From assembly GCA_029953675.1 (NCBI GenBank), contig JAMWBK010000004.1:2294001-2358000 (forward strand): DNA of 64,000 nucleotides, in the 5' to 3' direction. This document shows, one piece after another, positions 7,207 through 58,554 of this stretch. Both the position numbers and the translations under genes were made by a program. Numbering within the stretch: position 1 is the stretch's first letter; every line of letters begins with the position of its first letter. The notes beneath the pieces are model-generated. The model ran no database searches and was not told the DNA's origin. It saw only the letters and a list, made by a program, of their open reading frames with translations. This DNA is from Rhodosorus marinus CCMP1338 (taxonomy: Eukaryota > Plantae > Rhodophyta).

Positions 7207-7237
<31 letters not shown>
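7207..7237. repeat. (CT)n microsatellite, about 15 units
   Basis: Perfect ctctct run seen directly. Confidence 0.95.
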
Positions 7238-9944: not shown

Positions 9945-11114
9945 ATGTTCCGAGGGGTACGGGATCAGTTAAAGAACCCGCGGGCTCGGCGACGTCTGTG
10001 TAAAGGCCTTTCTGTGCTAGCTGTGACGTCTGCTCCTTGGGTATGGTACTACACAAGCGACTCGAAGCAGATCTTGCTGCTCCAGTGGAATACAATGCTT
10101 AAGAGCTCGTACATGTTCGAAGGTACGGGTCTTTCTCAACGTGCGGCGGCGGCTCGCGAGAGCTTCTCTGGACAAGTGAGCAGCGTGACTCCCGATAGAG
10201 CGGTTCTAGAGCTTCGAGAAATCATGAACGTTGAGGGACTTTCCTCCCCGGACTGGGCCCATGAGGAGCTGGCGAGCTTAGGTGGTGTTGGGGTTTGGAG
10301 GGTTACCAACGCCGTCGCGAGTCCACAGGACAAGGACGATGAAGTCGCGATAATGTATGCCCATGGAGGCCGATTTGTTGCTGGAAGTGCAATGCGATAC
10401 ATGTATCTTCTGTCAACATGGACGTACCCTCTAAACGCATCGATCGGTGTTATAGACTATCCTTTAGCTCCGGAGGTTTCACCGGAACACATTGTAGAAG
10501 CGTTCACGCAGGCCTGTAGGTCGATCCTCGATGAGCAAGGTGGTGAACGGTTGATACTTGCTGGTGATGGAACGGGTGCTGCGATTATCTTCAGTGCCCT
10601 TATGAAGCTCAAGGACGAAGGTCGCGATCTTCCCGCGGCGGTGGTCCTGACGTCTCCTTCTGCGGATTTGTTGGCAGAGGGTTCCTTTGAACAAGACCGT
10701 TTGACCAGTAACCAGACATGGCGAGCGGTCAGAAGCCTCACAGGATCGGAGGAATCCCTACGGAGAGTATCCCCTCTTCGGCAAGAAGGCCTTGAGAAGT
10801 TTTCCGGCATGCCCGAAACACTGATTCTCTACGGAACCAGGGACCTCTCTGTTGACCAGGCCAAGCAGCTCAAGGACAGACTACTGAACGCCGACGTGAG
10901 GGTTGAAACGATTGAAAGAAAATACTTGTGGCCGAATTGGCTATTTTGCTACTACACATTCCCCGAGGGCTGGGCGGATATGCAGATAGTGAGAGATTTC
11001 ATCGATGGTGCCACATCCAGAACTCCTCAGGACGTTTCCCTTCCCCAACATCCATTCTTGAAATGGATAAGGGGAGTCTGGACGCGGAATGACCCCCAAG
11101 CCGAGACATCGTAG
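9945..11114 (+). CDS. HSL-family alpha/beta-hydrolase-fold protein (Abhydrolase_3-like) lacking the catalytic Ser; N-terminal membrane anchor
   Basis: 389-aa single-exon ORF with motifs YAHGGRFVAGS, IDYPLAPE, LILAGDGTGA, VLTSPSADL and LILYGTRD. Confidence 0.85.
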   Translation: MFRGVRDQLKNPRARRRLCKGLSVLAVTSAPWVWYYTSDSKQILLLQWNTMLKSSYMFEGTGLSQRAAAARESFSGQVSSVTPDRAVLELREIMNVEGLSSPDWAHEELASLGGVGVWRVTNAVASPQDKDDEVAIMYAHGGRFVAGSAMRYMYLLSTWTYPLNASIGVIDYPLAPEVSPEHIVEAFTQACRSILDEQGGERLILAGDGTGAAIIFSALMKLKDEGRDLPAAVVLTSPSADLLAEGSFEQDRLTSNQTWRAVRSLTGSEESLRRVSPLRQEGLEKFSGMPETLILYGTRDLSVDQAKQLKDRLLNADVRVETIERKYLWPNWLFCYYTFPEGWADMQIVRDFIDGATSRTPQDVSLPQHPFLKWIRGVWTRNDPQAETS

Positions 11115-11615
11115 GGCTCAATGCACGTCAACTCCTTTTCAACTGTGTATGGACCCACTGCTTGAGCGTATGTACCATTAGTGAAACCTAAAAAGAAAGA
11201 AGCAGAGAACTCGAGCAAGAGAAAGTGTAGTAAAGCCACCATGGATCAATATTTACAGTGAAAATAGACATGATCGGATAAGTGGAATGCCGCATGCCAC
11301 TGTGGTCCTATTCTACTCCGGAAGTTGACTGAATGTTTCGATCTCCACGATGCAGACAAGCGCCTGGTTGCAGGTGGTTGCTTCCCTGAAGATTCATCAT
11401 TCGATACGGTCAAAGCTTCTCTACCATTAAGTCATTGTTGGACAGTCCAAACGAATCAGCTCCCGGTCTCCAACTGCCTGAACTAGTTGGTAGCTGCCTT
11501 CGGACCCCTTCCTCGCAAGTTATCCTGCTATACTGTGCCGGCAGCACGTGAACCTAGCAGAGATATCGGAATTCTTGGTCGTTTAACACAGGATTCCTTC
11601 CCAAAGCGTTGTGGG

Positions 11616-14600
11616 TTATGAAATTCCTACCTGAAGAATTTGATCTGCATGATCCACACTGAATACGTACGGGTCTTCGGCAACCGGTGCCTCCACCATC
11701 ATTATCTTAGGTGGGCTCAGCAACCCGCTTCGAAGAGGTATTATATGCCTCACAATATTCTTCTTTTCTGCCACAACCTTTCCTCTCTGCTTTCCCGCAA
11801 CCACCCACTCCTTTGGGTCGTGCTTAATTTCATACAGAAGAAGCTCTTGAGCAAGAGAGTTTTTCGATGATTCCAATATCGGCTCTACAGTAAACTCAAA
11901 CTTCACTCTTGAACCCACGACTGCATTTCCCTCAACACTGCGGCGGACCTAGCGCACGAATACCGAAGAAGCACACGAGATGCTGCTGTTAGCTAAGGTT
12001 GAGTGTAGGTTGATGCAGCAATACGTTCTTTTAGTACGCTGTCGGCTTTCGTTACCAAAAAGCTTTTCGCCTCCTTGACCAAAGCTTCCAAGTTGCACAC
12101 CCCCTCTGAGAATTGGGAAGCCCTATCTCCTCCTGCAGCTTGCACCTCAACGCTTATGGAGACGAGGCTCTCCTCATCGGGGCCTGAAGTATCCGCAGAG
12201 CGTTTGACTGGAAACACAGTGTGAAACGTGCTTGCTGGTTGAATCTTCTGCTGGAGGAGGTCGCCGTGGGGTGGACGCTCGGTTCTGTCGATTAACCATT
12301 TCTTGCCGGTAATCTTGAGCTCTGCGTTGAGGATCCCAAGCTCGGCTTGCTTCATTTCGTTCAGGATAGCTATCGATAAAAGAGAGGAATCCGGCGAAAC
12401 GCTTTCCAATCTCGCGATGAACTTAAGCGGTCTCACGAATTCCAAAACCTTCGACATCTGCCGGCTGATGACTCTAGGCATACCACCATGCGAGAAGGAC
12501 AACGTCGCCTTAACTTCCAATTCCGCTTGAAACACTTTGCGTTCCAATGAACTCTCCAACATGTACCTAGGCACGACTTGATCAACTCTGAAAGGTACTT
12601 GCACACTATACGCTGCACTTGGTTCCAACTGAAGGTCCACCCTCTCCGAAACAGAAACACACTCGCTTCCATCCTTGTCCATCAAGTGTATGCCGGCTTG
12701 TACGTCCCTTCGCAGGGATTCAGGTGTATTAAGTTTTACGTGCATTTCGACAGTACCATCGTACCCCGAATTCCCAGCCACAAAGCTGACCCTAGCAGAA
12801 TTCTCACTGCCGTTGATCAGGGGCAAGTCTTCAGCATCCTCGACAGAAACTTCCAAGGGTGTTGAACCAACGCTTTGAAACAATAGGTTCGATGGTGTTC
12901 TCCCACGCACCCCGCTTTCAAAGTTTTCCCAAAGCCTGAGCTTTTCTAGGCTCATGCTCACCGTGTACAGCTTGAACCACCCCGCAGAAGCAACTTGTTG
13001 TGTTGATGCCAGAACGGAAGTAGTGCCCGGCTTCAAGTGGAGCGGCCCAGGGTTGGTGAACATAAGCACCGCAGTGCTGATCCGCTCCTCCTCCGCTGCT
13101 CCTCGCATCTCCACAACCAAGGAAGTGAACGACATCTCAACCTGAACCCTGGAGCGGAATGTAATGACGACTGACGCCTGCTCGCCTGCAGTCCAGATTT
13201 CTGCTTGCGGCTGTATTTGTACAGAGAAAAGCTTTCTCAGGTCGAACTTCATCTCTTCCGGCAGCTCACTCTAAAGACCGGTAGATTTCTGTAAGTAAGT
13301 CATGACGTTCGGCAAATTTTTTTGTGCGAAGTCCTTACCGCTGCTTTAGTGGCCTCCTTAACCCATTTTTGCGAGTCTTCTGAAAAAGCATTCTCGCCCA
13401 TGTCAAGCACCAATTGATCAGACCCGGATATTGTAACTGCAGCCAGAGCGCTAAGAAGGTAGTCTTGCTTCAAATTCAACCTTCTCTCCAAGTCAGCTAC
13501 TCTTGAGCGGATCTCATTGTGAAGCAGATCCCAACCACCCTTCGCAGAGAACTGGTGACAGTGACTGGCCAGCAGCTCTACCGCCTGCTTCTCAAACCCT
13601 TTCTCAAGACAGAGTTGTCCGAGTTGAATTTGCATTCTGTCCGCAAAGCTGGACCGTCCAGCAGCCTAGCCGAGACAGTACGTAGGATTGGTGTCAGAGG
13701 ACCACGTGAAGAGGTTTCGTAGTTGCTGACACGCGCCGAAAGGCTTACCCTAAACACTTCGGCTGTCTGCATAGTCATTTCGGTATATAGTTCCCATGCG
13801 CTTTCTCTGCTTTCAAGCGCTCCTTGGAGCTCAGGGTGCTGGATGAGCCTAGCAGTACACGCACAAGTCTCGAGCTTTAGACTAAGAAACAGAATCCACG
13901 TGTAAGCGTGACAATCGTGGGAAAGGCTTACCTAGCAACTTCTGCCGACTTGGGAATGCTTTCGACTATGGACATACCATCAAAAAGATCTGGAATGCTC
14001 GCTTCAGCCATTGCACGAAACTGGTCAAGCGCATGTTGACAGCAGAACGCAATGAGCTTCGCAGTTTTTCGACGGGTTGCTTTCTCCGAACCATCCTCTT
14101 TTCCGGCAGGTCCGATCAAGCCCGATAGGACATCTATAAGAGTTCTGGATAGGGCGCGGCAAAGGGGAAGATGAATTCTTCTCAGTTCGGGCATATATGA
14201 TGTTGAGTCGCAGGGTTTGGGGTTTCTGCCGCTTCGCAGATTCCTTGGAGGTCCGTCTTCAATTGCTCAGTTACCTCGATGCTGAAAACCCCCACAAATA
14301 GGATGCAAACCTGAGATACTCAGACTTGGTCTTCTCAAATTCCTCCTTGAACCTCCCTTGAACGAACTCCAAGAATTTGATTCCTTTTTCTCCCACCTGC
14401 ACTTTCCTGTCCTGTTCCATCAGAATCTTCATCCTCGATGAAAACAAGTAGGTTCTAAGGTCCAACTCAGTGATCGTCCCAGAGGCGATCATCCTCCTAT
14501 AACTTTTCGCTTCTGGATCTATAACATTAGCCACAAACTCCCCTGCGTCAGCGGGAAAAAAGGTAGTTGCCCCTTCTTTCCTCTCTATCAGCGCCTGTTC

Positions 14601-15618
14601 AAGCTCCTCGAAAATCCTACGACAGGAAAACAAAACGGGAACTCAAAATCGATCCTCGAACTTCTTTTCCGTCAAAGTAACGCCTGTTTCAGCAGTTGAG
14701 CAAGGTGAAATGCAACAATAGCTAGCCCCTCGTCAAAAAAAAACCGGGACTTTTTTGACTTACACAAGAGCCAGATCGAGCCGATTCAGTTGAACGAAAA
14801 GCTCCGCCTGAGGCACGTAGGCGTGCACGTAGCTACAGAATGACCTGTTTCGTAAGAATCAAAGAGAATTTGGACGTTAATGTCAGCCGGAGTTCGTTCG
14901 CTCGTTTGCGTCACTGACGATCCCTTTTGAACCAAGAAGTCTTAACTTCTTCTGAATAGTTCGAAAGTTGGAAATCATACCACCCAGGAAGGAGCCTGTT
15001 CGCATGCGCCTGCGCCGCTTCCTTCTTCAGCGATTCGATCTTCAGCTGTATCGAAATGTTCAGCGATTCCCGCAGCCTTAAGCTTAACTCTTCCCACGAA
15101 ACGCTTTCTAAGGTCGCAGTAGCATTCACGTAGAGTACTAGCAGTCTATCCTTGCCGCCTCTAGTCAACCCCAAGGTGATTCTGAACTTTTCCAGGGTTG
15201 CTTTATTTGCTTTCGACTCCTCCGCTCCTTGCCTGGATACGTAAGCCACGAGCCATTCCGTACTTCTGTCCGTGCATGACTCCACAAACTCGCTGATTCG
15301 AGAGCCCTTGTCTTTGAAAGCATCATCACTCAATTTTGAGAAGAAAAACAGCTGCACGTATGGTCTCTTCAATCCAGTTGCCGATGGCTGCCTCCTCAAA
15401 TTCTCAGCGATCCCATCTACAATATCACCCCTCAAATCATTAAATAAGAACGTAACATTCTCAGCTTTAATCACAGCCCCTTCTGCGTTTCTCCACGCTA
15501 CAGAGGTCTCAAACGTAGCCGGGAGCTGTACACGGGACCCAGCATTTCCATCATCTGAAACTCGTATCGCCAGCCCTCTCCCAGCCTGCCGATCCTCGCG
15601 TTCCTGCGCGCTAGACAT
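11616..15618 (-). CDS. TRAPPC10: TRAPP II complex subunit TRAPPC10/TRS130, multi-exon
   Basis: Exon ORFs 14911-15618, 14271-14633, 13928-14194, 13300-13800, 11993-13252 and 11616-11918. Motifs RLLPGW, TTFFP, ITELDLRTYLFS and the C-terminal WVVAGKQRG...IIPLRSGLLSPPKI match the TRAPPC10 family as I know it. Confidence 0.8.
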
Positions 15619-15798
15619 CACTTCTCCATCCCAGCCTTGCACAAAAATACTCTGACATTTCCCTCTCCTCCCTAACAGCCTTCAAGTCAAAACCCAAAAC
15701 CAAGCTCCCCCCACCGCTCCAAAATAAAATAAACAGTACACCTCAAACGCGATCTGGCATATGCCCAATGCTCCACCTCAATCCGAGCAAACCTCCCT

Positions 15799-16253
15799 GG
15801 CCAAAGCTAACAGGCGGATGCTACCCACACAAACCCACGCCTTGTCCTGGCCAAAGCAAACCCGCCAATGTTACACACTCAAAGCTTTTCTAGGCCAAGT
15901 CTATTCCTGCCAATGCTACCCAGTGACACTCTGGTGGGGACGTTTTTGCTGGCCAAACCAAACATACCATTGCTCCTACCAAACAGAACACACGATCTTC
16001 TTCCCGGGGGCCAGACCTAACCCGCCAATGTTACTAAGTCTCGACGGCGTTCTAGTTGAGGCAGCCGAACTAGACTAGGTTGATTGGTTTCCCCTTTGAA
16101 ACCACAACTCTTTTACGGGCCAAGCCTAACCGGCGAATGGTATCCAGCGACACCCACTTGGGCCCCTCTTGCTAGACAAACCAAAACAGCCAATATTACT
16201 CCTATCTGACAGTTTATCTTCCCCGCTGGGCCAACCTAACCAGCCAATGTTAC
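15799..16253 (+). repeat. Degenerate repeat-spacer array: 8 copies of a ~26-bp core (consensus ~GGCCAAACCTAACCNGCCAATGYTAC) with unique spacers
   Basis: Cores start at 15799, 15849, 15893, 15951, 16009, 16118, 16174 and 16228. Periods are 50, 44, 58, 58, 109 (one missing or decayed unit), 56 and 54. Confidence 0.8.
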
Positions 16254-16377
16254 TTCTCACGATGTAGTATTGCTTAATATAGGGAAGTGTTACGGAGCTT
16301 ATCCTTTGAAACCGTTGCAGACGTACCTCATTATCAATCCTCGTTAAACGCTTCAGTTGAATCGTGGAGGTGGATTG

Positions 16378-16579
16378 AGCTGTCCAGGACTGTGGCGGGA
16401 GGGCTTTTGAGTATGCACATATCATTTCGCTGCACATGGTCTACCAAAGACAACGACGCCTGGATCAGATGGATTGCTAGCTGTCCAGGACTGCGGCGGG
16501 AGGGCTTTTGAGTATGCACATATCATTTCGCTGCACATGGTCTACCAAAGACAACGACGCCTGGATCAGATGGATTGCT
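16378..16579 (+). repeat. Tandem direct duplication, 2 x 101 bp, one mismatch
   Basis: agctgtccaggactg(t/c)ggcggg...cagatggattgct occurs at 16378 and at 16479. Confidence 0.95.
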
Positions 16580-17029
16580 GAGCGCTAGATACTGCTTTTC
16601 TGCCGAATTGTTTTAGCGCTTAACAGGATTGATACCGGGGACAACTTAGGCTTGATACTCGCCGCTGTTCGTCTGTAGAAAACAAAAGCTGTTTGCGATG
16701 GAACTCTATTCCCCGACCACGAGGAAGGAGTGAACACATATATGAGATGTTCGTTTAGCTACATGTACCCATATTGATGTCGCGCTGGTACGGTTACTGC
16801 TTTGATGCTTGTTCCCGAGGACGTTTTTCAAAGCGAAGAGGATTGTGACATGAGATGGCAAGAAACAGATCTTTTCATCCTGAAGGTAAGCCTTCCACAG
16901 AGTATTAGGCGCGGCCCGGCCTTCGCCTGTCTCGGAGAATTTTGAACCGACCTGGTGCACAGCCTTAAGAGTTCCAGTCCGGTGTGATTTTGTTTTAAGC
17001 TTCTCCCGCGTGGGGTGATGGACGCCATG

Positions 17030-17537
17030 AATCAGCATCAGCAGTCCAAAAATCGGACAGAATCCAGCACAAGCGTGGTCTGATGCTGAACATTTTCTCC
17101 GGGCACTCGTTTACAGGATAGAAATACTAGCTCTACTGCGGGCTTGGATAGCTGCCTCCGAAGTTCTACCAAGCCTCGACAAGACCGATGCAGAGCAAGA
17201 TATCAAGAACTCATTAAGACAACCATGCAATCCAAAACCTGGGCTGAAAAGGGACGACGTACTATCTAGAAGCCGTAAGTTCATCCGTGGTACCTTGATG
17301 TTACGCCTCAAAACTGTACGCGGTATTGAGGATACCTCCGCAGTGGGATTGCGGGTCCGAGCCACGTGCTCTTCAGCAGCACAAGCACAAAATCTCAGCG
17401 AGCTGCGGAACTTCGAAAAAGTACCTCGTGGAGAAACTCTTTTGCGTCAACAAGGTGCAGTCTCCTCATGGTATCAATGTTTGTCCAAGCACAGCGCCTT
17501 CACCTTGACGAACCTTCAAATATTGACCCAGCAATAG
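17030..17537 (+). CDS. Possible internal exon of an unidentified gene
   Basis: About 169 open codons (AWSDAEHFLRALVYRIEILALLRAWIAASEVLP...) with no early ATG. A strong donor (gtaagc) lies at ~16886 upstream, but no complete model was built. Confidence 0.3.
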
Positions 17538-17626
17538 CTTCCCACGCGCTCGCCTTAGCGTACTCAAAGGCTGGGAATCTACGAAGTATTCAGAAACTTG
17601 CAGCTACTCCTTCCCGGGTCCAGACT

Positions 17627-19327
17627 TCATGTAAGGTTTTGGATTAGCGTGATTGCTATCCTCACGGGAAGGAGCAGGTATAGCGGTAAAACCATGCCAG
17701 CGGCCTGCAGGTATTTCCAGATTAGAAGCTCGTTAAGTGAAAGCACGAAGGATGACGATGAAGAGAAAACATGAAGCTCACCGTAAGCAAGGAAGGTTTA
17801 TGATAAAAATCGATGTACGGAGCAACGTTCGACTTCACCAAGTAAAACACTGCCAGGGACAGCACCAACAGGGAGACGAAAGAAACGGTCCATACGAGGA
17901 CCAGCCCAGTTGCAAGGAAGCCCCTAAACTCAGTCAAGGCTAGGATTGGGAAGGCTGATCGGTGCAATTGAATCTCCAGCTCAGCTTTTGAGATACGAAT
18001 CTGGGAGGGCTGTACGTGAAGATGCGCGATCGTCTTCACTGGCGGAGTTGGCGCAGTAAACGGAATCTTTTCTGCAAACGTCATTCTCACGGTTTGGTAT
18101 TCGCTCTGGCGGGATTAGTTGAAGCGGCGCACATCAACCAGCAATCAGCAACAGACTATTCAACGCTGGAGACGTCTTGGCATGACTTGACACATTCTCA
18201 CCGTAAAACCGCACAACAAGGGAACGAGCAGTATCCATGCCCTCAGTGTCCGAATAGTGGAAGATTGAAACCGCAGCGAAGTGACTGCAGCATAGCTTCC
18301 CACTGTTTCACCACATAGGTTCTCTACACCCATGAAGACCTTTTGAGAGGAAAAACGGCTCTCATCAGGTTTAGAAAACTATTCCCTGGAGCTGTCGACT
18401 TAGCTGTTCAGTCCTCAAGATACCTTAAAAGAATTAGTTGCAAAATTTCCATCTGATTCCGGTAGAACCATATTCAGGGATGCGGATATGGACTTCATGT
18501 CCGGAGAGCAGGGACATAGTCGGCGGCAGGAGCAATCTGAGTGACATGGAGAGGCGAAAATGCGACTAGAACTGAGGTTGCCTACCTTCGAATGGTAGAA
18601 CCGATCAGACGGAAGGGTTGCCTGAGCGACGAGCCTAAGGGCGAGTACAAAAGGAGGCAGACCATGGCGCTGTTAAATTAAATAACGGAATGCTCTGAGA
18701 GCAGGCCCGTTAGTGAATTGCTTACGTGTAGTTCTCCCCCAAAGGCACGAAGTCAATAGGTACTCGAAAATTGGTTCTGGTAAACAACTTCAGGTAGCCG
18801 TACAGACTGTTCCCAAAGGAAGGCAGAAAATTCCTTAAATGAGTCTCAGGACTAGAATTGGAGATGATAATTACTCAAACACAATTGATTCATATTGACG
18901 GGTTCGCCTACGGAAAGAAGGTGCTGTGGAAAGAACAACTGCGTTAAGTACAAATCGCAATTTTGCGCCACACTGGCTGGTGGATAGCGAATCCCTGCGC
19001 GTACCATGAAACTGAGAACGGGATCAACGTAAGGCCGAGCAAGAACACGGCCAGGAGAGTAAGCCTTCGCTTAATGCGTCTTCTGCGAGCTTTTCGAAGC
19101 GACTCAACAGCTTCCTTCGAATCTATCGTGGTGCTCGATACGGATGTCAGGGACGAACTGTCCCTATCATCAATCCCCCGATCCAAAACCTTCCCTGAAC
19201 TCCACCAGAATCCACGTGCAGAGCTACGAGAACTGCGAGAACTCGATACCTCACTGCTCGTGTCTTCAACTGGCACCGGCGTCTCACTTGCCCCCGCCTT
19301 TCCTCGCCTCCTCCTGAGTCCCAACAT
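17627..19327 (-). CDS. Probable seipin (BSCL2/SEI1-like lipid-droplet biogenesis protein), multi-exon
   Basis: N-terminal TM (RRLTLLAVFLLGLTLIPFSVSWY...HQPVW), luminal pieces (SVRLPEVVYQNQF; CLLLYSPLGSSLRQPFRL..LLLPPTMSLLSGHEVHIRIP), then IRISKAELEIQLH directly before a second TM. This order parallels seipin. The last intron (17781-17705, gtgagc..ctaat..ctgcag) joins in phase 0. Confidence 0.55.
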
Positions 19328-38863: not shown

Positions 38864-38896
38864 TCAAATTGGCGTCAAATTGGCGTCAAATTGGCG
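38864..38896. repeat. 3 x 11-bp perfect tandem repeat TCAAATTGGCG, intergenic
   Basis: Seen directly, ~420 bp upstream of the ORF at 39312. Confidence 0.9.
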
Positions 38897-39311
38897 TTCG
38901 TAAGTAATCAAAAAGAGAATCTTTTTGAGAGATATTGCTCTCAGCTGAAAAAAGTACTACATTTTGGTATATGAGAAATCGAAAATATGAAACTTTTAAA
39001 TTAGATTTGCGTTTTGTGGAAAAATAGTTTTGTTTTTTTCTGTTTCTATCTCGGGGGAGAAGAATTCAGGATATGAAGGCTTTTTTGTTTGTTGGGAAGA
39101 AGATGGAGGTAAGGGATCTCACTGAGGAGATGGAGGTTGGGGGTTTGGGGGGAGGTCAAGGGCCTTGATATGATACCGCCGAGAATGCAGACGGGAAGAG
39201 GAGAAAGTATAGATCCATATGTGTAGAAAATTACAACCTGTGGATTTGTGACGTGATTTGTTTTTGAGAACAAAGTGTTCTTACTCTGGATGAACTGCTC
39301 CCTGTAAGGAG

Positions 39312-40166
39312 ATGGCGATGGATGTGCTGTTCGTGGTTGGAGGCGGGCTGCATGCTGGACGGGCGAGGAGTCCGCTTCGCGATCGAAAGCGGAGTATTGT
39401 ATGTACTATAGGCGGTTTCGTGGATGAGAATCAGTTTACGCTTCGGGAACGGAAGAGACGTGTGCTGGCAGAGGAGTTTGGCCTGGACAAACTCCAGACT
39501 CAGCTGCATACGCATGTGTTCGTCAGGGACGAACTGGATGATGCGTTTCTCGATGGTCTTCATCGGCATTGTAGGGATATTAGGGCAGGTGAGGGGGGAG
39601 GTCATTATCTGTTGATGGCATTGCACGTGGCAGATCCTTCGTGGGGGGGGAACAGAGGCATACCCCCCCCACATCCGCGGTTCATGCTCGTTGAGGATGA
39701 TGTAGCTGAGGACACAAAAACGGCCACAAGCCAGTGGATCGAATTGCTTGGAGATGCTCTAGGTTCTCGGCTTCTGCGGGATGAGACCCACACCGTGCCA
39801 TACAAGAGAGTCCGTAGATTTGGGGATCCGAAGCTTGGTTTGAAGCCCGAGCGGGACGAGGACGAGCTGGTTTTGGTTGTGGAAGTGACTAACGCAGACT
39901 GGACATCGAAGGAAAAGATAAGCGGCCTTTCCAACTTGCTGATGCAGAGAGGGCATGAAATGATCGATCAAAAGAGAATGCTCTGGTACGAAGTTTTGCA
40001 GTCCGAATCTGAGCCCTCTGTTTTCAAGACTTTGGAGTTGTACGCAACAGTCGATGACTTGATGACAACAGTGGAGGAGACAGACGAGGAGTATTCAAAA
40101 CAATTAGAGTCTTACAAGGCAGCTGTAGCTAGGGTTAGACAAGCTTTTAGAATTATTAGGCCGTGA
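39312..40166 (+). CDS. Probable plastid protein with two ABM-like (dimeric alpha-beta barrel, LsrG-like) domains
   Basis: 284-aa ORF with a transit-like N-terminus. Segments HVFVRDELDDAFL...PRFMLVE and WYEVLQSESEPSVFKTLELY resemble the ABM pattern. Confidence 0.6.
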   Translation: MAMDVLFVVGGGLHAGRARSPLRDRKRSIVCTIGGFVDENQFTLRERKRRVLAEEFGLDKLQTQLHTHVFVRDELDDAFLDGLHRHCRDIRAGEGGGHYLLMALHVADPSWGGNRGIPPPHPRFMLVEDDVAEDTKTATSQWIELLGDALGSRLLRDETHTVPYKRVRRFGDPKLGLKPERDEDELVLVVEVTNADWTSKEKISGLSNLLMQRGHEMIDQKRMLWYEVLQSESEPSVFKTLELYATVDDLMTTVEETDEEYSKQLESYKAAVARVRQAFRIIRP

Positions 40167-50081: not shown

Positions 50082-53000
50082 CTACTCGCCTTCAACGTAT
50101 AGTTTCCCAAGGTCGCTTAGTGGAAGCACTCGGACATTAGAATCTTCTGAAATATTTTCGAAGCAGACGATGCCTTCGACCATCACGTCGTCTCTTTCGA
50201 CTCCAATAATCGTGCCCGCCTCACCAACCAAGGACGCTTCACCTCTCAGCAAGCAAACTCTGTCGTTCTTCTCAGGAGCGATTGGCTTCAAATCCGAGAA
50301 CGCTATCTCAGTGGTCCCACCTTCTTCAATAAAGTGCACGATGTACCTCGGAGGTTCTGACTCGACAATGAGCTCCTTGATGTAAGCCCGTTTTCCGTCT
50401 TGCTCAATCTCAACATTGACCATGGCCTTGGCCTCTCCAATTCCACTATCCTCTTCCTCAGCTGGAGACTCTGCTTGTGGATCGTAAGGCGTTGACGGCC
50501 CCATCATCGGTGTTGCAGGACTGCGGGCATCCAAGAAGGCGGGGGTTCCAGGGTCCCCTGGTGTTATTGGTGTTCGCGCTTCACGGTAGGCGTAGTCGTC
50601 TAGGCCAGGTGTTGTAGGACCGCGCGGGTTAGCGTCAAATGCACTAGCATTGTGTGCTGGCGTTGTGGGTCTCCAACCTGAATGCCGAAGATAAATATCA
50701 AGCGCAACAGAAGATTTGTAAGGAAAAACTCTCATAATTATGATAAGTTTTCAGAGTCATATCACGCACCGTCCGTGAGCGGCGTCCGGGGCTCATGAGT
50801 GGGATTCGCAAATGAGTTATGGAGCGGGGTTCTGGACCCGCTATCGCCCATCGGAGTACGAGGGCCTAACTGGTCTCGCCGAGGCTCATGCAGCGGTGTC
50901 CGAGAACCAAAGCTGTCATGCAACGGTGTTCGGGAACCAAAGCCATCGTGTAACGGTGTCCTAGAGCCAAAGCTGTCGTGCATTGGAGTTCTGGAACCAA
51001 AGCTGTCGTGCATTGGGGTTCTCGAACCAAAGCCATCACGCATGGGAGTCCTTGATCCGTACGAGTCATGCATAGGAGTTCGGTTGCCGGAAAGCCCCCT
51101 TGAAGCACCGAAGCCTTGACCGCCGAAACCACCTGAGAAGCCACCAGACCCTACGCTGGCATCCTTCGGTATCACAGCTTCCCTTGGAACAGTAACAACC
51201 TTACATATTCCTGTATTGAATTTGCAACGTTTGTTGGTGGTTAGGACCAATTACGGTAGACAATTTCCCAAGACGGGGATAAGCAACACTCTCTTCGCCA
51301 CCTTAGCACTGCACCCCTCAGGAATTCTGAAGCGCACCTTCTAGTTCCACTCGGATCTTGTCGTTTGATGCATCAACAGCTCTTCCTGCATAGCCCTTAT
51401 AGCTACCTGCCTTTATCTTAACTTCCTTCCGTACGATTGGATCCCGCCCACGACCCCGACCACCTCCTCCGAAACCGCCACCGAATGATTTTTGTGGGGC
51501 TTTAAACTGAGGGACACCACCACCGCCAAAACCACCAAAAGACGGTCCCCGCTTCTGTCCTTGGACCACGCACGATCTGGCAGGAGCAACGAGGAGACCG
51601 CAGTTCCGAGTCTCATCCGGGGCCTTCAAGTCGCAGGATGTGAAGAGTTGAGGACGCGTGAGAATACGAGTTCAGAATCTCGACAGGTTTTTCTGCCTGT
51701 TCTCACCTGGAAGAAGATGAAGTTGTCTGCAGTATGCTTCACTACACCGTGTCTGTTTGTGTGCGGTCCTTCAATAACCTTGACCGAGTCGCCCACCGAA
51801 ATAGGATGCCTGGACCTGTCTCCAGGCCGATTACCCCGATCGTTGAGTCTACCCCTGACTTCCTGAACCGACTTAACCACAGCATTGCCGTCTGTGTCCA
51901 AAAGAGTCACGCTATCTCGCGAAACCTTCACCACGACACCTTTGCTCCGAACGTCGGTATTTAAACTGACCAGGTCGAAGAGCTGATACAAGTTGTGACC
52001 AGCTGGAGCTGCGGATAAATCTGCATCCGAGGTGAGGTTCGAAGCCAAGACCTGCCAGAGTGCACAGACAATGGTCAGGACCCTCGGTATGGGCACACTG
52101 CGAACCTTGGAACATACCTTCAATTCTTCCTTTGAAACATCATTGAACAAAACAACGATTTCCCCTTCGACTTTTACGACGGTTCCAGAGTCACCAGCAT
52201 ACCGACCGCTGTTCACCTTCAACGTGTCTCCTATCTTGAAGCTCTTCGTGAGGTCCCCCTTCTCACAGGTTACTGGCTCGGGGAGCTCCTTGGCAGTCAC
52301 GACGACATACTCCCCTTCAACTGACTTGACAGATCCTCGCAACCCCTTGAGGTCTCCACGAATGAACAGCACTGAATCGCCGGGGAAAAAGCTAATCTTC
52401 CGTTGGCGAGCAATAGAAGATAGGTTTAATGGGACGGCCGGGGCTTCAGCTTCAAGTTCCTCGATCTCAGTCCTCATTCTCTGCTCCGCGGTCTGAAACA
52501 GTTCCAGTTCCTCTATTTGCGGCTGCAAAAGCATAGAAAAATTTTCTTTTTTGTAAGCAACATTCGCCATAGCAAAATAAATACCCACGGAGTGGCACGC
52601 CAACGGCGAGTCGCATACCTCTTGAATGTCAGTGTCGAGCTGCCTCGCGGAAATCCTTTTGTACAACATGCCGTAGGCGAAAGTTTGCCCTTTCCATACT
52701 TCGGACCTCTCACCGGTGTATGTGTCACTTTTCTCTTCAACGTAGGTCTCACTTAGCCTTTCCGCCTCTTCTCGTTCGAAGAGCTTCTGCGGTGGCCTGC
52801 TCTTCAAGTTTTCGTCGTTGAAGGGTTTGGAGCTAGCGTAATTGATTCGCGGAATCAGTCGCAATGTGACAGAGCCTGAAGCAAAATTCATGCAATCGTT
52901 CCCACTCTCTCAGTACGCGTCAGTCGCGAGAAAGAAAAAAACCAGAGACCAGTCGCTGCAGGAATTAATCGAAGTCGTAGCGTGCCTCGCGTACCGTCTC

Positions 53001-55197: not shown

Positions 55198-55610
55198 TCA
55201 CTCGTCCTCCCTCTTAAGAAGCGATTCTCTTCTTTGCAGCTTTCGCGAAGCTTCAAAAACGGCCTTGTATACTTCACAAACTGAGTCTGCCTTCTCGCTA
55301 TCTGCACAACTGGCTTTCAATTTAGACAATATGAGCTCTTCTCTCCAGGGGACATAAACCTGCGGAGGGATAAGTTCTAGGTTAGCAATGCTTTCCGCAA
55401 CCAGCGGCCACTCATGACACTTACTTCCTCGTTCGACGCCATTTTTGCTTTTCCAATGGCAAGCGATAGAGCAAATCGTTTTTGCAAGGATTCCACAATC
55501 TGCTGATCAATTCTATCGATCTCCTCCCGCATCAAGTTCACCGCCACATGGTTACTGTCCACACCGGGACGGGGCGAAACAAGGGGTTCTCCGTTCTGCC
55601 CATTGGCCAC
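55198..55610 (-). CDS. Small monofunctional AroQ (type II) chorismate mutase, at least 2 exons; start uncertain
   Basis: MREEIDRIDQQIVESLQKRFALSLAIGKAK | VYVPWREELILSKL...EVYKAVFEASRKLQ. Residues equivalent to E. coli R11, R28, K39, R51, E52, S84 and Q88 are all present. Confidence 0.85.
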
Positions 55611-55908
55611 AACTAAAGCCTAAAAATTCCGCACCACCAAAAACAAAAAGCCATCTGTTGAGCGAACTACAGACGACACAACAAAGAAAAGGGAGAATTA
55701 ACAACACACAATCTCATGTTTGAAACCTTCCCAGCCAACACCCACCTCTTCACCTACAGAGCTCATAGTGTCAAACAAAGGAGAAACACAAAACAAACCA
55801 AAATTCACGTGCCTGATCCAAACTAATCTAAACTATAAATATTCGTCTTTTCACATGCATCCAAAAGACCTCCCTCCTCACCTACAAACCAGTCCAGCAA
55901 ACCTACAG

Positions 55909-55987
55909 ACTCTCTCTGTCTCTCTCTATCTCTGTCTCTCTCTCTCTCTATCTCTCTGTCTCTCTGTCTCTCTCTATCTCTCTCTCC
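55909..55987. repeat. Compound (CT)/(CTGT)/(CTAT) microsatellite
   Basis: Seen directly. Confidence 0.9.
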
Positions 55988-58554
55988 ACCCTTTCATATC
56001 TCTCCAGAAACCAACACCAGCCTCCCGAAACCCCGACAACATCTTGCGGAATTTCTCAGCGGCTACCCGTGTTCGAGAGCGGACCATCAAATAAATAAAT
56101 AAAAACAGCCATCCCCTTATCCCCTTACTACTTCGAAACTGTCCATCCCACACACGCCCAAACCTCTTCCTTACACTTTCAGCCGACACACCCCCCCTTT
56201 TCTTTTGACCGACTGAAGGATTTGACCCTCCATAATATTTCTTAATTATACAAAAAGACATATGTTCACTCACTTTTGCATGAAAATTGAAAACCGGTTT
56301 ACTACCCTACCCCGTCGGCATAAAGCAACTTCTGAATCTACGCAGTTGTGCGGGAAAGAACGAATATAGGTATTTGGATGCAATCGCAACCAATCATGCT
56401 CCAAGGAATTTCGATATACAATCATTTAAGTATAATGATTGAATTCGTATTTTCTTTTAATTTATTATATTCTATATGGGACGCGGTAAGACGATTTCGG
56501 CATTTATTATTCGTTTTTCTTGTTTTCTTTTTTTTGGGGAGGGGGTGGGGGGTGGTTGGGCTGACTCCCTCTCTGCTTCCTTCCGTTGGGGAGGGAGATG
56601 GTGGGGAAAGGGGCCGTCTCCTAGAGAAGAGTTGTGCTGACTTAAAGCGTGACATCGTAATGTTGGCTTGTGCGCTTCTGACGGGCACTATCGCGAGCAC
56701 GAGTGGCGAGGGTGAGGGCGAAAGGGTTCCAGTGCTTCCTAAGAATCACGGTTTCTTTTGGGTGCCGACTTCTATCGAACTGTTGGAGGCCCTGGTTTTC
56801 GCTCTCGGACTGAAGCAGGGATCATCCACAGCTTTGGATGATGTGCCTCACTCTTCTCAGGTAGATGATTGAGGGGCTTGGTCCTCGCAGGGAGGTCGTC
56901 TCGAAGTCTCCAGACAGCTCGACTGTGCTTCTATGACTACTCCAACATGAATATGTGCAAGACGCACTACCACTGTTCCGAACCAAAAACATAATACCAC
57001 CCGATGTTGCTCAACAACGGCTCACACCGTGCCCCAGTAAACCACACTCTCCTCCACATATACACCCATCATATCTCAGCTCCCTCATGATGCATTTCTT
57101 CATCGCTACACGACCACATTCCAACCTGAGTTATTTTTTGTCCAGAAGAGGCAGAGCCTCATCAGCAAAAAATCGATTGGCCCAAAGCATACGAGCCTCA
57201 CTTCAAGAGATGGGTTAACAACCTGTTCACAAGGGCAATAATACCATTCCCTCCCACTCCTCCCACTCCCCCCCCTCCCCGTGTCCATCTCTTCCCAGTT
57301 CCAAAACTTACCAGCCCCTTTCGCTGTTCCATCCAATCATCAGAGAATACCTTACCTACCGCGATCGTCTGATTGGACATCGAGTAAGATTAGTATCTCT
57401 TACCAAAAAAAGAGGAGGAATCAACTTCACCATCAGATAAACTTTAAAAAACAACTTAAAAAGGAAAACAAGCATTTGGGTTTGACAACCACGTACCGTC
57501 CTGGCCCCCCCCTTCTAGCAAGTCCAAATCCACCCATTTATTGAATACCAAAACAAATCACTGCGTACTGATGTTTTAAGCAATTGAATATCTCAACCCC
57601 CTCGAAAAAGAATTTCCAGATCTTTCCACGGCCTAACCCCTACATCCATCAACGATTATTCCCGCAAAAAGTTGTTTTTCGGTTCTTTATTCGTCTATTT
57701 CTGGGCGTTTAATCATTCCACCCCCCTCGTACAGCGTATCTTTCGACGTTGAACGTGTAAGGAGGCGTCATCCGTCAAGGATAGTCAAATCTATCATAAA
57801 ATTATTGGTAAAAGGATACTATTCGATTTGGTAAATGGGGTTTGGTAAAAATGTTTTTCGGATATTTTAGGGGCTGTCGAGTTTTCTATCACATTCCTTC
57901 TCGCTTCGGAAAAAGGTTCTCTCACAGGAGCTGGTTTTGCATTCGTTTAAGGGAATCCTAGTTGGGGTAATGGGTGGAGGGGTTGGGAGGGTTGGGGAGG
58001 GTTTGGTCTTGGAGAAGCCGAAACGAGGAATTTTATGAGGTCTGGAAGAAGACGATTAACGTGATTTTCGGTTTTTTCGTAGACCAGTTCGTTCTTCCTT
58101 GGCTCCTGCTGTGGGTTTTGTTTTCCTGTTCGGCGTGGGCGTTGGTGGGAAAAGGGGGCAGCAGGTCGCGCCTTTGTGAGGGTGCTGTACTGTACATTGG
58201 ATGTGGTGAGGAACTGAGAAACTATCTCATTTTTGGATGCTTCTGACGGGTTTCCTCTGTGCGCTTTTGTGCGGCGGGGTGAAGACGGGAGAGCATAGTG
58301 GTGGTTTGTTCATGGTAAGATGTGTTCGAGGCATGAGGTCGTTGGCCGAGGGAGGAGATCTTTGTGGAAATTGCCAGGGAGTTCGGATGTGGTGAGGAAT
58401 GTATAAACGAGGTTTTTTTCTGTTAAGGAGGTGAGGGAGGGGGTTTGAAGTTGTGGAGCGTTAATTGCAATCTTCGGGACGAGCGGGTGAGGTTTTTTTT
58501 ATTGGCAGGTTGCTTGCCAGGTTGTAATTGGTGTTGTTATCGATTTGTACAAAG

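Follow-up and report, generated by a model that had tools for sequence, protein, structure and literature searches.

The array studied here lies in the nuclear DNA of Rhodosorus marinus CCMP1338, on a 3.19-Mb nuclear scaffold where the nearby genes bear introns. Positions refer to the window, that is, the whole 64-kb stretch of DNA that was analyzed. The array is placed between the 3' end of the seipin gene and the start of TRAPPC10, both of which lie in tandem on the − strand, and the GC content of the region (~50%) equals the nuclear background.

11410..15618, − strand: TRAPPC10 gene, with a 1113-aa product in the NCBI annotation and the ATG at 15618.
15721..15733, − strand (the TRAPPC10 strand): T-rich TATA-like stretch TTTATTTTATTTT, 103-115 bp upstream of the ATG.
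17627..19327, − strand: seipin gene, lying upstream of TRAPPC10 and sharing its strand.

The N-terminus encoded by a Rhodosorus transcript from MMETSP (91% identity) confirms the ATG at 15618; this transcript-derived protein was the sole relative found for the TRAPPC10 N-terminus and has no contig on record. The array occupies the region 132-722 bp upstream of the ATG, with no called gene between the two, and it is 130-180 bp from the TRAPPC10 ATG and 1.4 kb from the seipin stop codon. A preliminary description of this DNA had placed the start of the array ~180 bp upstream of TRAPPC10, and the first core was found 181 bp upstream of the ATG. It had also noted no cas, transposase or reverse transcriptase gene nearby, and none is present among the called neighbors (abhydrolase, TRAPPC10, seipin and amine oxidase). 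We infer that the T-rich stretch TTTATTTTATTTT is a candidate core-promoter element of TRAPPC10.

Two other repeats were observed in the window. A second tandem duplication, 120 bp from the array at 16371-16579, consists of a 101-bp unit in 2.1 copies with 97% identity and is very young. A perfect 3-copy repeat containing ATTGGCG is located at 38864-38897, upstream of another gene.

Units of the array

The array consists of eight full cores, additional partial or core-less units, and two higher-order blocks.

15750..15775, + strand: partial extra unit u0, GATCTGGCATATGCCCAATGCTCC, the copy nearest TRAPPC10, in which the CCAAT half of the core survives.
15799..15824, + strand: core u1, GGCCAAAGCTAACAGGCGGATGCTAC, with a degenerate CCAAT (CGGAT).
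15849..15874, + strand: core u2, GGCCAAAGCAAACCCGCCAATGTTAC, with 0 mismatches to the degenerate pattern.
15887..16111, + strand: higher-order block A (u3, u4, u5, x), ~225 bp.
15893..15919, + strand: core u3, GGCCAAGTCTATTCCTGCCAATGCTAC, 27 nt with a 1-nt insertion; unit 1 of block A.
15951..15976, + strand: core u4, GGCCAAACCAAACATACCATTGCTCC, with a degenerate CCAAT (CCATT).
16009..16034, + strand: core u5, GGCCAGACCTAACCCGCCAATGTTAC.
16063..16117, + strand: core-less unit x, the fourth of block A, inside the 83-bp gap and ending in CCTTTGAAACC.
16112..16340, + strand: higher-order block B (u6, u7, u8, x'), a duplicate of block A with ~62-69% identity.
16118..16143, + strand: core u6, GGCCAAGCCTAACCGGCGAATGGTAT, with a degenerate CCAAT (CGAAT); unit 1 of block B and cognate of u3.
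16174..16199, + strand: core u7, AGACAAACCAAAACAGCCAATATTAC, cognate of u4.
16228..16253, + strand: core u8, GGGCCAACCTAACCAGCCAATGTTAC, cognate of u5 with 81-85% identity.
16254..16340, + strand: tail x', which belongs to block B, corresponds to the 83-bp gap and falls outside the coordinates of the preliminary description.

All eight cores of the preliminary description were recovered with the same sequences and positions, and the spacer lengths it gave (24, 18, 31, 32, 83, 30 and 28 bp) are correct. The periods were said to be mostly not multiples of 3, and the values of 50, 44, 58, 58, 109, 56 and 54 bp include one multiple. The partial unit u0 (GCCCAATGCTCC, ~15750-15775) is additional to these eight. 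It resembles unit u4 (CCATTGCTCC) by eye and in alignment, and its ATTGG is located at −151 from the TRAPPC10 ATG in gene orientation (the box lies 147-151 bp from the ATG), on the upstream side of the T-rich TATA-like element and ~35 bp from it.

The 83-bp gap had been explained as one decayed unit, which is plausible, and a counterpart of the gap follows the last core. Unit x retains an inverted ATTGG and GCCGAACTAGAC, which by eye only is like a 5' half-core, and the tail x' carries GGAAGTGTTAC, which is like a 3' half-core, together with CCTTTGAAACC. The latter sequence is found both at 16094 in the 83-bp gap and at 16305 after the last core.

Tandem and block duplication

The units run head to tail in a single orientation with a roughly regular period, as in a tandem repeat. 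With u0 and x counted, the periods are 49, 50, 44, 58, 58, 54, 55, 56 and 54 bp, and autocorrelation gave peaks at lags of ~50-58, 102-110, 160 and 210-225. No autocorrelation peak appeared near lag 14, as a ~14-bp sub-period would give (GCCAA occurs twice per core), and TRF did not call the array as a repeat.

Blocks of several units are also repeated, as in a higher-order tandem repeat. The global alignment of block A with block B, including both cores and spacers, scored ~11 sd above shuffles, and an unbiased BLAST aligned 16105-16254 with 15880-16035 (68.6% over 156 bp, E=1.2e-10). When the spacers alone were compared, S5-S8 (p=0.004) and S3-S6 (p=0.01) were the top two of 36 pairs, and both are cognates predicted by the duplication; the third cognate pair, S4-S7, ranked 7th of 36 (p=0.08). 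Spacers S1, S3 and S6 form one family with 54-64% identity, the u3 and u6 spacers being 64% identical. Homology over whole units is thus seen in the young layer (blocks A/B and S1/S3/S6) and is undetectable in the old layer, in which spacer similarity has fallen to background.

Because the block was duplicated with its spacers and the gap has a counterpart, the array is a decayed tandem repeat with a ~54-bp unit and hierarchical duplication, and not a repeat-spacer array built by insertion. The preliminary description had considered the spacers mutually unrelated, which does not hold for the homologous pairs S3-S6 and S5-S8 or for the ~225-bp block duplicated with its spacers; integration footprints, one of the origins it offered, are contradicted by the same tandem and block-duplication structure. 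It had itself taken spacers that align with one another above chance as the sign of a decayed minisatellite, and such alignment was found. Its expectation that an ordinary minisatellite keeps its spacers similar is true of young repeats only: the spacers of the young layer are similar, and those of the old layer are at background.

These data trace the array to an ancient repeat of a ~54-bp unit, now represented by ~10-11 unit equivalents at 15744-16340. Unequal exchange or replication slippage, the usual routes of tandem duplication, enlarged it in two layers or more: the old one produced the individual units, and the younger one copied the four-unit ~225-bp block. The parts between the cores have since drifted, down to background similarity where they belong to the old layer and to ~55% identity where they belong to the young one, while the core has stayed at ~72% pairwise identity.

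Conservation of the core and its putative binding sites

The core has the 26-bp, CCAAT-containing consensus (CT)GGCCAAACCTAACCnGCCAATGTTAC. In the 64-kb window, the degenerate core GGCCAANNNNANNNNNCCAATGNTAC gave 7 matches with up to 3 mismatches, compared with 0.51 expected, and 0 of 100 shuffles reached 7 matches. All of these matches are in the array, on the + strand and within 455 bp. A PWM of the cores scored 28-36 bits inside the array versus a mean shuffle maximum of 13. Outside the array, the degenerate pattern and the PWM found nothing above chance in the 64-kb window, the PWM scan being a check that the preliminary description had proposed, and BLAST detected no dispersed copies of the 2-kb intergenic region in the window. 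Weak inverted matches between u2 and the 101-bp repeat (I1, I2 and I5) were rejected as chance, and the PWM has no match there. The 18-nt core pattern CTAACCNGCCAATGTTAC was found in 12 metagenome contigs, with a single match in each and no arrays, i.e., as chance hits, and a scan of viral sequences with this core pattern gave 0 matches.

The mean pairwise column identity was 0.72 in the best 26 columns versus 0.29 elsewhere. The old-layer spacers are at background similarity (~15-25%) while pairwise core identity ranges from 58 to 88%; in these tests the core is defined from the very sequences that are compared, and the comparison is between paralogous units in one genome. In the young blocks, A versus B, the cores are 78% and the spacers 55% identical (Fisher p=0.0005, a value with some circularity, since these sequences also served to define the core). 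Within the core, invariant columns stand beside a column of zero information, a profile that looks more like a contact pattern than like wholesale homogenization.

The contrast between core and spacers was compared with neutral simulations at a uniform rate, in which indels were included, the inferred duplication tree was used and the sequences were re-aligned in the same way. None of the 800 runs matched the observed contrast (maximum 0.31 versus 0.44 observed), a result that rests on the assumed tree and indel model. Since the contrast did not arise in any neutral run, the data point to constraint on the core beyond uniform neutral decay.

The core is composed of a CCAAT box, a second GCCAA 14-15 bp upstream of the CCAAT, and, in the interval separating the two, a CTAACC element. 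Five of the 8 full cores have an exact CCAAT, as does u0, and one further copy stands in the gap in the opposite orientation. The remaining three full cores each depart from the pentamer by one mismatch (CGGAT, CCATT and CGAAT), and NF-Y is normally intolerant of an altered CCAAT pentamer. Boxes of the NF-Y type typically stand ~60-100 bp upstream of the TSS. The core-to-core spacing is 44-58 bp, without helical phase. CCAAT/ATTGG pentamers, counted in the 500 bp upstream of each of 13 other genes in the window, are mildly enriched there (1.77 vs 1.07 per 500 bp) and mostly have the ATTGG orientation, as at the array.

The best explanation of these observations, with about an even chance of being correct, is that the array is an old tandem repeat whose core has been held by purifying selection as a cluster of composite protein-binding sites upstream of TRAPPC10. 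The most likely reason for such selection would be that the core is a composite site for sequence-specific DNA-binding proteins, with an NF-Y-type CCAAT box, the second GCCAA and CTAACC as the predicted sites in each core. Because the conserved 26 bp far exceeds an NF-Y site, at least one further factor would be involved. The array could then act as a homotypic cluster, or upstream activating region, through which factors would occupy the TRAPPC10 promoter to a higher or steadier degree, and the proximal unit u0 would supply a CCAAT box ~35 bp upstream of the TATA-like T-rich stretch. A homotypic cluster of composite sites was among the options of the preliminary description, and it stands as the best functional reading because the core is conserved beyond neutral decay and the array is directly upstream of a gene; the near-regular ~54-bp phasing it proposed is a spacing that varies over the range given above. 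As in a homotypic cluster, at least three motif copies occur above chance within a few hundred bp, and the intervening sequence changes faster than the sites, as judged from paralogous units of one genome and in a model-dependent way.

Other explanations and significance

A functionless, decaying minisatellite, a neutral relic of tandem duplication whose core is no binding site, is a less likely but serious alternative. The core would then have been kept through local mutation or indel rates, homogenization of very short tracts, or chance together with ascertainment. The hierarchical tandem structure is clear, and the young 101-bp duplication in 2.1 copies 120 bp away indicates a region prone to duplication. 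CCAAT has been lost in 3 of 8 cores, the spacing is not maintained, the motif is confined to this locus within the 64 kb, and TRF does not call the array; all of this fits decay. However, the core/spacer contrast was reached in none of the 800 uniform-rate simulations, and neutrality needs a several-fold rate difference that is sharp at 26-bp resolution. Gene-conversion tracts are usually far longer than 26 bp, so conversion would have homogenized the spacers too.

A boundary function, in which the protein-bound array would keep seipin transcription out of the TRAPPC10 promoter as a roadblock terminator or insulator, is improbable. It draws on the tandem arrangement of seipin and TRAPPC10 on the − strand with the array between them, on the apparent constraint on the core, and on CTAACCCG within the core, which we take to be close (one mismatch) to a Reb1-type Myb site as used in yeast roadblock termination. 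The position is more promoter-like, however, given the distances of 1.4 kb from the seipin stop and 130-180 bp from the TRAPPC10 ATG.

A foreign or mobile origin concerns where the array came from, and is compatible with function or with none. The sequence would be a NUMT from the R. marinus mitochondrial minicircles, more exactly from their constant region with its tandem repeats, or else a piece of a dispersed repeat; unclassified interspersed repeats make up ~4% of the genome. We consider such an origin very improbable: no part of the 2-kb intergenic region has a second copy in the window, the units are deeply diverged from each other, unlike a recent transfer, the GC content of ~50% is that of the nuclear background, and no organellar gene fragment was seen in the flanks. 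The supplements of the genome paper list no NUMT coordinates.

The chance is slimmer still that the array encodes polycistronic small RNAs (snoRNA-, miRNA- or crRNA-like), in which the core would be a handle for processing or protein binding and each spacer a variable guide. The outward layout alone (conserved core, variable spacers, ~54-nt units on one strand) agrees with this option, which had been raised in the preliminary description. The spacers are partly homologous through duplication and not independently acquired, and the cores vary too much among themselves to serve as a processing handle. An Rfam scan of 14000-18500 at E<=10 found nothing over the array, and the RNA fold of the whole array was no better than shuffles (z of −0.36 on the + strand and +1.33 on the − strand). 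The folds of single units gave z from −2.45 to +1.17 with no consistent strand or hairpin, and as to C/D boxes, no RTGATGA was present on either strand and CTGA occurred once. Searches for coding sequence were likewise negative: no ORF in the intergenic region matched Pfam, and the spurious ORFs that cross the array, sought in assemblies of sequencing runs, were not on record.

A CRISPR-like adaptive array, the headline of the preliminary description, or repeated integration footprints have a practically negligible probability, because nothing but a visual repeat-spacer impression speaks for them (superficially, a ~26-bp conserved element alternates with ~18-32-bp variable stretches) and the array fails each defining feature of CRISPR arrays tested: the repeats are 58-88% alike (mean ~72%) and not near-identical (typically >90%); the spacers are 18, 24, 28, 30, 31, 32 and 83 bp and not uniform, and S3-S6 and S5-S8 are homologous and not unrelated, having been duplicated along with the repeats; the locus is a putative promoter region in red-algal nuclear DNA, on a 3.19-Mb eukaryotic scaffold with intron-bearing genes and not a prokaryotic or viral genome; no cas or integrase gene is among the neighbors; and the core pattern CTAACCNGCCAATGTTAC has no viral match.

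Read as a repeat-derived cluster of putative binding sites, the array has counterparts in several known systems. Promoter tandem repeats are described in two reports as modifying the expression of the neighboring gene (PMC4857002, PMC3566118). Like promoter minisatellites with transcription factor sites, the array stands immediately upstream of a gene and is built of head-to-tail units, tens of bp long, that arose by tandem duplication. In contrast to those usually studied, which are young, homogeneous and polymorphic, it is old and TRF-negative, its units are ~50% identical overall, and conservation is confined to the 26-bp core. Homotypic transcription factor site clusters are treated as a source of robustness in a review (PMC4621482). 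The array resembles them in its 8-9 composite motif copies within ~500 bp near a gene start and in sites that exceed the inter-site sequence in conservation; it differs in that its sites are putative and the tandem and block duplications that produced it can still be read, unlike in most clusters.

Multi-CCAAT (NF-Y) promoters, such as those of cell-cycle and topoisomerase II-alpha genes, carry several inverted CCAAT boxes at a spacing of ~32 bp. The array likewise has several boxes in ATTGG orientation within a few hundred bp of the start, with the proximal box near a TATA-like element, whereas its spacing is ~54 bp and 3 of its 8 full cores lack the exact CCAAT. As in alpha-satellite-type higher-order repeats, cognate units across the ~225-bp blocks are closer than neighbors within a block, but the array has two full, strongly diverged blocks over ~0.6 kb and lies in a putative promoter region, not a centromere. 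The 60/81-bp enhancer repeats of the Xenopus rDNA spacer have a conserved core, are stacked upstream of the promoter and are additive; they serve RNA polymerase I and are homogeneous. The array, known from sequence alone, shares with them units of tens of bp, a conserved core and upstream stacking.

The composite core is absent elsewhere in the 64-kb window, the part of the 31-Mb genome that was scanned, so it is not yet a recurring cis-element. There is a small chance that the 26-bp element (GGCCAA-CTAACC-GCCAATGTTAC) is the recognition module of an undescribed red-algal regulatory system and recurs in arrays at other Rhodosorus loci, which would be, e.g., promoters of membrane-trafficking genes or boundaries of tandem genes. 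Arrays of this kind, expanding by tandem duplication as selection favors site number, would form a lineage-specific cis-regulatory "array" code, not a one-off relic; the ATTGGCG repeat at 38864-38897 would be a young example.

The main value of this analysis is that a false lead is removed, since this eukaryotic array is not CRISPR-like. The locus also illustrates how an ancient tandem repeat comes to look like alternating repeats and spacers once only a portion of every unit survives. If the core is a composite binding site, the locus would show cleanly, in nature, how duplication of single units and of blocks multiplies a cis-regulatory module. Its paralogous units serve as internal replicates that reveal an apparently constrained 26-bp element in R. 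marinus; for red algae in general, hardly any promoter elements have, to our knowledge, been characterized. Should protein binding prove true, the core would be a candidate element (CCAAT plus partner sites) for promoter dissection and for red-algal expression tools, a use that would be helpful, if not surprising.

The repeat array and its genomic setting

The array is part of the 2 kb of intergenic DNA between the seipin gene, which it follows, and TRAPPC10, which it directly precedes; both genes are on the minus strand. The Rhodosorus marinus CCMP1338 nuclear genome (31.2 Mb, 49% GC) contains ~15% repeats, without annotated satellites (PMC10250338). Neighboring genes were placed using Pfam and the gene calls of contig JAMWBK010000004.1, assembly GCA_029953675.1.

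Genes around the array (contig gene calls and Pfam)
9945-11114, + strand: alpha/beta hydrolase, single-exon
11410-15618, - strand: TRAPPC10
17627-19327, - strand: seipin
from ~20160, + strand: amine-oxidase / carotenoid-isomerase-like gene

The TRAPPC10 start codon at 15618 was confirmed by an MMETSP Rhodosorus transcript, whose product begins MSSVQEREDRQAG and shows 91% identity to the first exon in the window. The region 15001-16000, spanning the TRAPPC10 5' end and the array, has a GC skew of -0.34, a strong strand asymmetry; its plus strand is C/A-rich, hence a G/T-rich gene-sense strand in the promoter region.

The eight ~26-bp cores (u1-u8, starting at 15799, 15849, 15893, 15951, 16009, 16118, 16174 and 16228) were all recovered at the positions and with the sequences reported in the preliminary description, and its spacer lengths were correct on checking. 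A partial ninth unit (GCCCAATGCTCC, ~15750-15775) was added on the gene-proximal side. Allowing up to three mismatches, the degenerate core pattern matched seven times in 64 kb, against an expectation of 0.51, and 0 of 100 shuffles reached seven; all seven were inside the array on the plus strand, and the remaining core copy has a 1-nt insertion. The core weight matrix scored 28-36 bits within the array, and scanning the whole 64-kb window with it detected no core outside the array beyond the shuffle level. The array was absent from the TRF output, which fits units less than ~70% alike.

Elsewhere in the window, the 30/60/90-bp TRF tandem repeat at 50889-51081 (minus strand) is coding: it encodes the decapeptide GSRTP(M/L)HD(S/G)F in the C-terminal repeat region of an Spt5 homologue (Pfam Spt5_N, NGN, KOW1-5 and CTD on the called gene), an ordinary feature. 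Intergenic CT-rich microsatellites, with (CT)n and CTCTCTCTGT variants, occur at 55910-55986 and 7207-7237, and the highest self-similarity of the window is at 55600-56100.

Block duplication and spacer kinship

The array is a tandem repeat close to the promoter, duplicated hierarchically and now decayed, in which a 26-bp core containing CCAAT is conserved. The preliminary description had treated it as a CRISPR-like array with mutually unrelated spacers; the observation of repeated cores was real, but neither the unrelatedness nor the analogy held. The stretch 15887-16111 (block A) is duplicated as 16112-16340 (block B), spacers included. Printed in register, the two series correspond one by one: the unit at 15893 resembles that at 16118, 15951 resembles 16174, 16009 resembles 16228, and the 83-bp gap resembles what follows the last core. 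Global alignment of the two blocks scored ~11 sd over shuffles, and BLAST, run hypothesis-free with the intergenic region as query on the whole window, matched 16105-16254 to 15880-16035 (68.6% over 156 bp, E=1.2e-10). Among all 36 spacer pairs compared without their cores, S5-S8 (p=0.004) and S3-S6 (p=0.01), both cognate as predicted, took the top two ranks, and the third cognate spacer pair, S4-S7, ranked seventh (p=0.08). S1, S3 and S6 form a spacer family with 54-64% identity in multiple alignment, and autocorrelation of the array peaked at lags of ~50-58, 102-110, 160 and 210-225. These alignment, BLAST, spacer-pair and autocorrelation results indicate a tandem repeat of ~54-bp units with higher-order structure: a four-unit block of ~225 bp occurs in two copies, and two to three more units stand before the first copy.

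The 83-bp gap had been taken as one decayed unit, and block A does have its fourth unit there, without a core. The matching stretch of block B, 16254-16340, lies beyond the previously described array; by eye, a 5' half-core survives in one of the two and a 3' half-core in the other. The spacers align above chance, the outcome that the preliminary description had listed first as refuting its reading, since it would point to a decayed minisatellite; the array very probably arose by tandem and block duplication.

A small hairpin, TGGTTTC-CCCTTT-GAAACCA (16085-16104), lies inside the core-less unit of block A; its block B counterpart (~16300-16316) retains only CCTTTGAAACC, so pairing is not conserved. 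A very young tandem duplication at 16371-16579 (101 bp x 2.1 copies, 97% identical), ~120 bp past the last core, lies in the same intergenic region and shows that such duplications still readily arise there; apart from weak inverted matches at chance level, the duplicated sequence has no relationship with the array unit.

Conservation of the core

When the eight full units were aligned with MAFFT, mean pairwise identity was 0.72 in the best stretch of 26 columns and 0.29, close to the composition background, in the other columns. Neutral decay at a uniform rate, including substitutions and indels, was simulated along the inferred duplication tree, with parameters fitted to the identities seen among cognate and non-cognate units; the resulting units were re-aligned identically. 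The observed contrast of 0.44 was reached in 0 of 800 simulations (mean 0.11-0.13, maximum 0.31). Between the young blocks A and B, cores were 78% and spacers 55% identical (p=0.0005), a comparison that is partly circular as the core was defined on the same sequences. The invariant columns (GGCCAA, C-A-ACC and GCCAATG-TAC) flank one column with no information. Gene conversion generally works on tracts far exceeding 26 bp, so homogenization would also have affected the spacers. Purifying selection on a 26-bp element is the simplest reading, and the core is probably under functional constraint. That the array is a functionless relic is possible, although we consider it rather unlikely.

Candidate function and alternative origins

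The core consensus is (CT)GGCCAAACCTAACCnGCCAATGTTAC. Of the eight full cores, five keep its CCAAT box exactly, as does the partial unit, and the gap has one exact copy in the opposite orientation; a second GCCAA lies 14-15 bp upstream of the box, with a CTAACC element between them. We take the resemblance of the CCAAT to NF-Y sites, and of CTAACC to Myb-type, telobox or Reb1-type sites, as leads. In the TRAPPC10 orientation the box reads ATTGGC; a T-rich, TATA-like stretch follows the proximal box at a distance of ~35 bp, and the ATG follows it at 147-151 bp. For the 13 other annotated genes of the window, the 500-bp upstream regions show a mild enrichment of CCAAT/ATTGG pentamers (1.77 vs 1.07 per 500 bp), a weak effect in a small sample, with the ATTGG orientation commoner (16 vs 7).

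A gene of unknown function (284 aa, ATG at 39312) is preceded, at 415-448 bp from its ATG, by a perfect 11-bp x 3.1 tandem repeat (TCAAATTGGCG) at 38864-38897, with GTAAGT immediately after the repeat. Each copy contains ATTGGCG, the heptamer of the conserved 3' part of the TRAPPC10 core, in identical gene-relative orientation; this may be a young multiplication of the CCAAT box or a coincidence.

Our probability estimates for the readings of the array are nested. There is about an even chance that the cores are protein-binding sites acting on TRAPPC10 transcription; a boundary or terminator role, a variant of protein binding, is improbable.

The R. marinus genome has abundant NUMTs, and its minicircle constant regions contain tandem repeats (PMC10250338); that paper lists no NUMT coordinates. 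A recent NUMT is unlikely owing to the deep divergence of units, nuclear-like GC content and absence of organellar gene fragments, features that do not make an old NUMT unlikely.

For RNA or coding readings, Rfam (E<=10) found nothing over the array, the fold of the whole array did not surpass those of shuffles for either strand (z -0.36 and +1.33), and neither a consistent hairpin in single units nor a C box on either strand was found. ORFs crossing the array had no Pfam match and no record as genes, and the unit periods, as first described, are mostly not divisible by three. Searching metagenome contigs with the 18-nt core pattern yielded 12 single matches, at chance level and with zero arrays, and a viral collection yielded none. 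A CRISPR array is ruled out, as all criteria tested fail: the repeats fall short of near-identity, the spacers vary in length and some are related to one another, cas genes are absent nearby, as had been noted, and the host is not a prokaryote.

The array belongs among known promoter tandem repeats and homotypic site clusters. Among 5.8 billion clustered proteins, the TRAPPC10 N-terminus (14911-15618) has a single detectable relative, the MMETSP product at 91% identity, so a second, appreciably diverged Rhodosorus lineage exists, which would be the natural comparator for the array.
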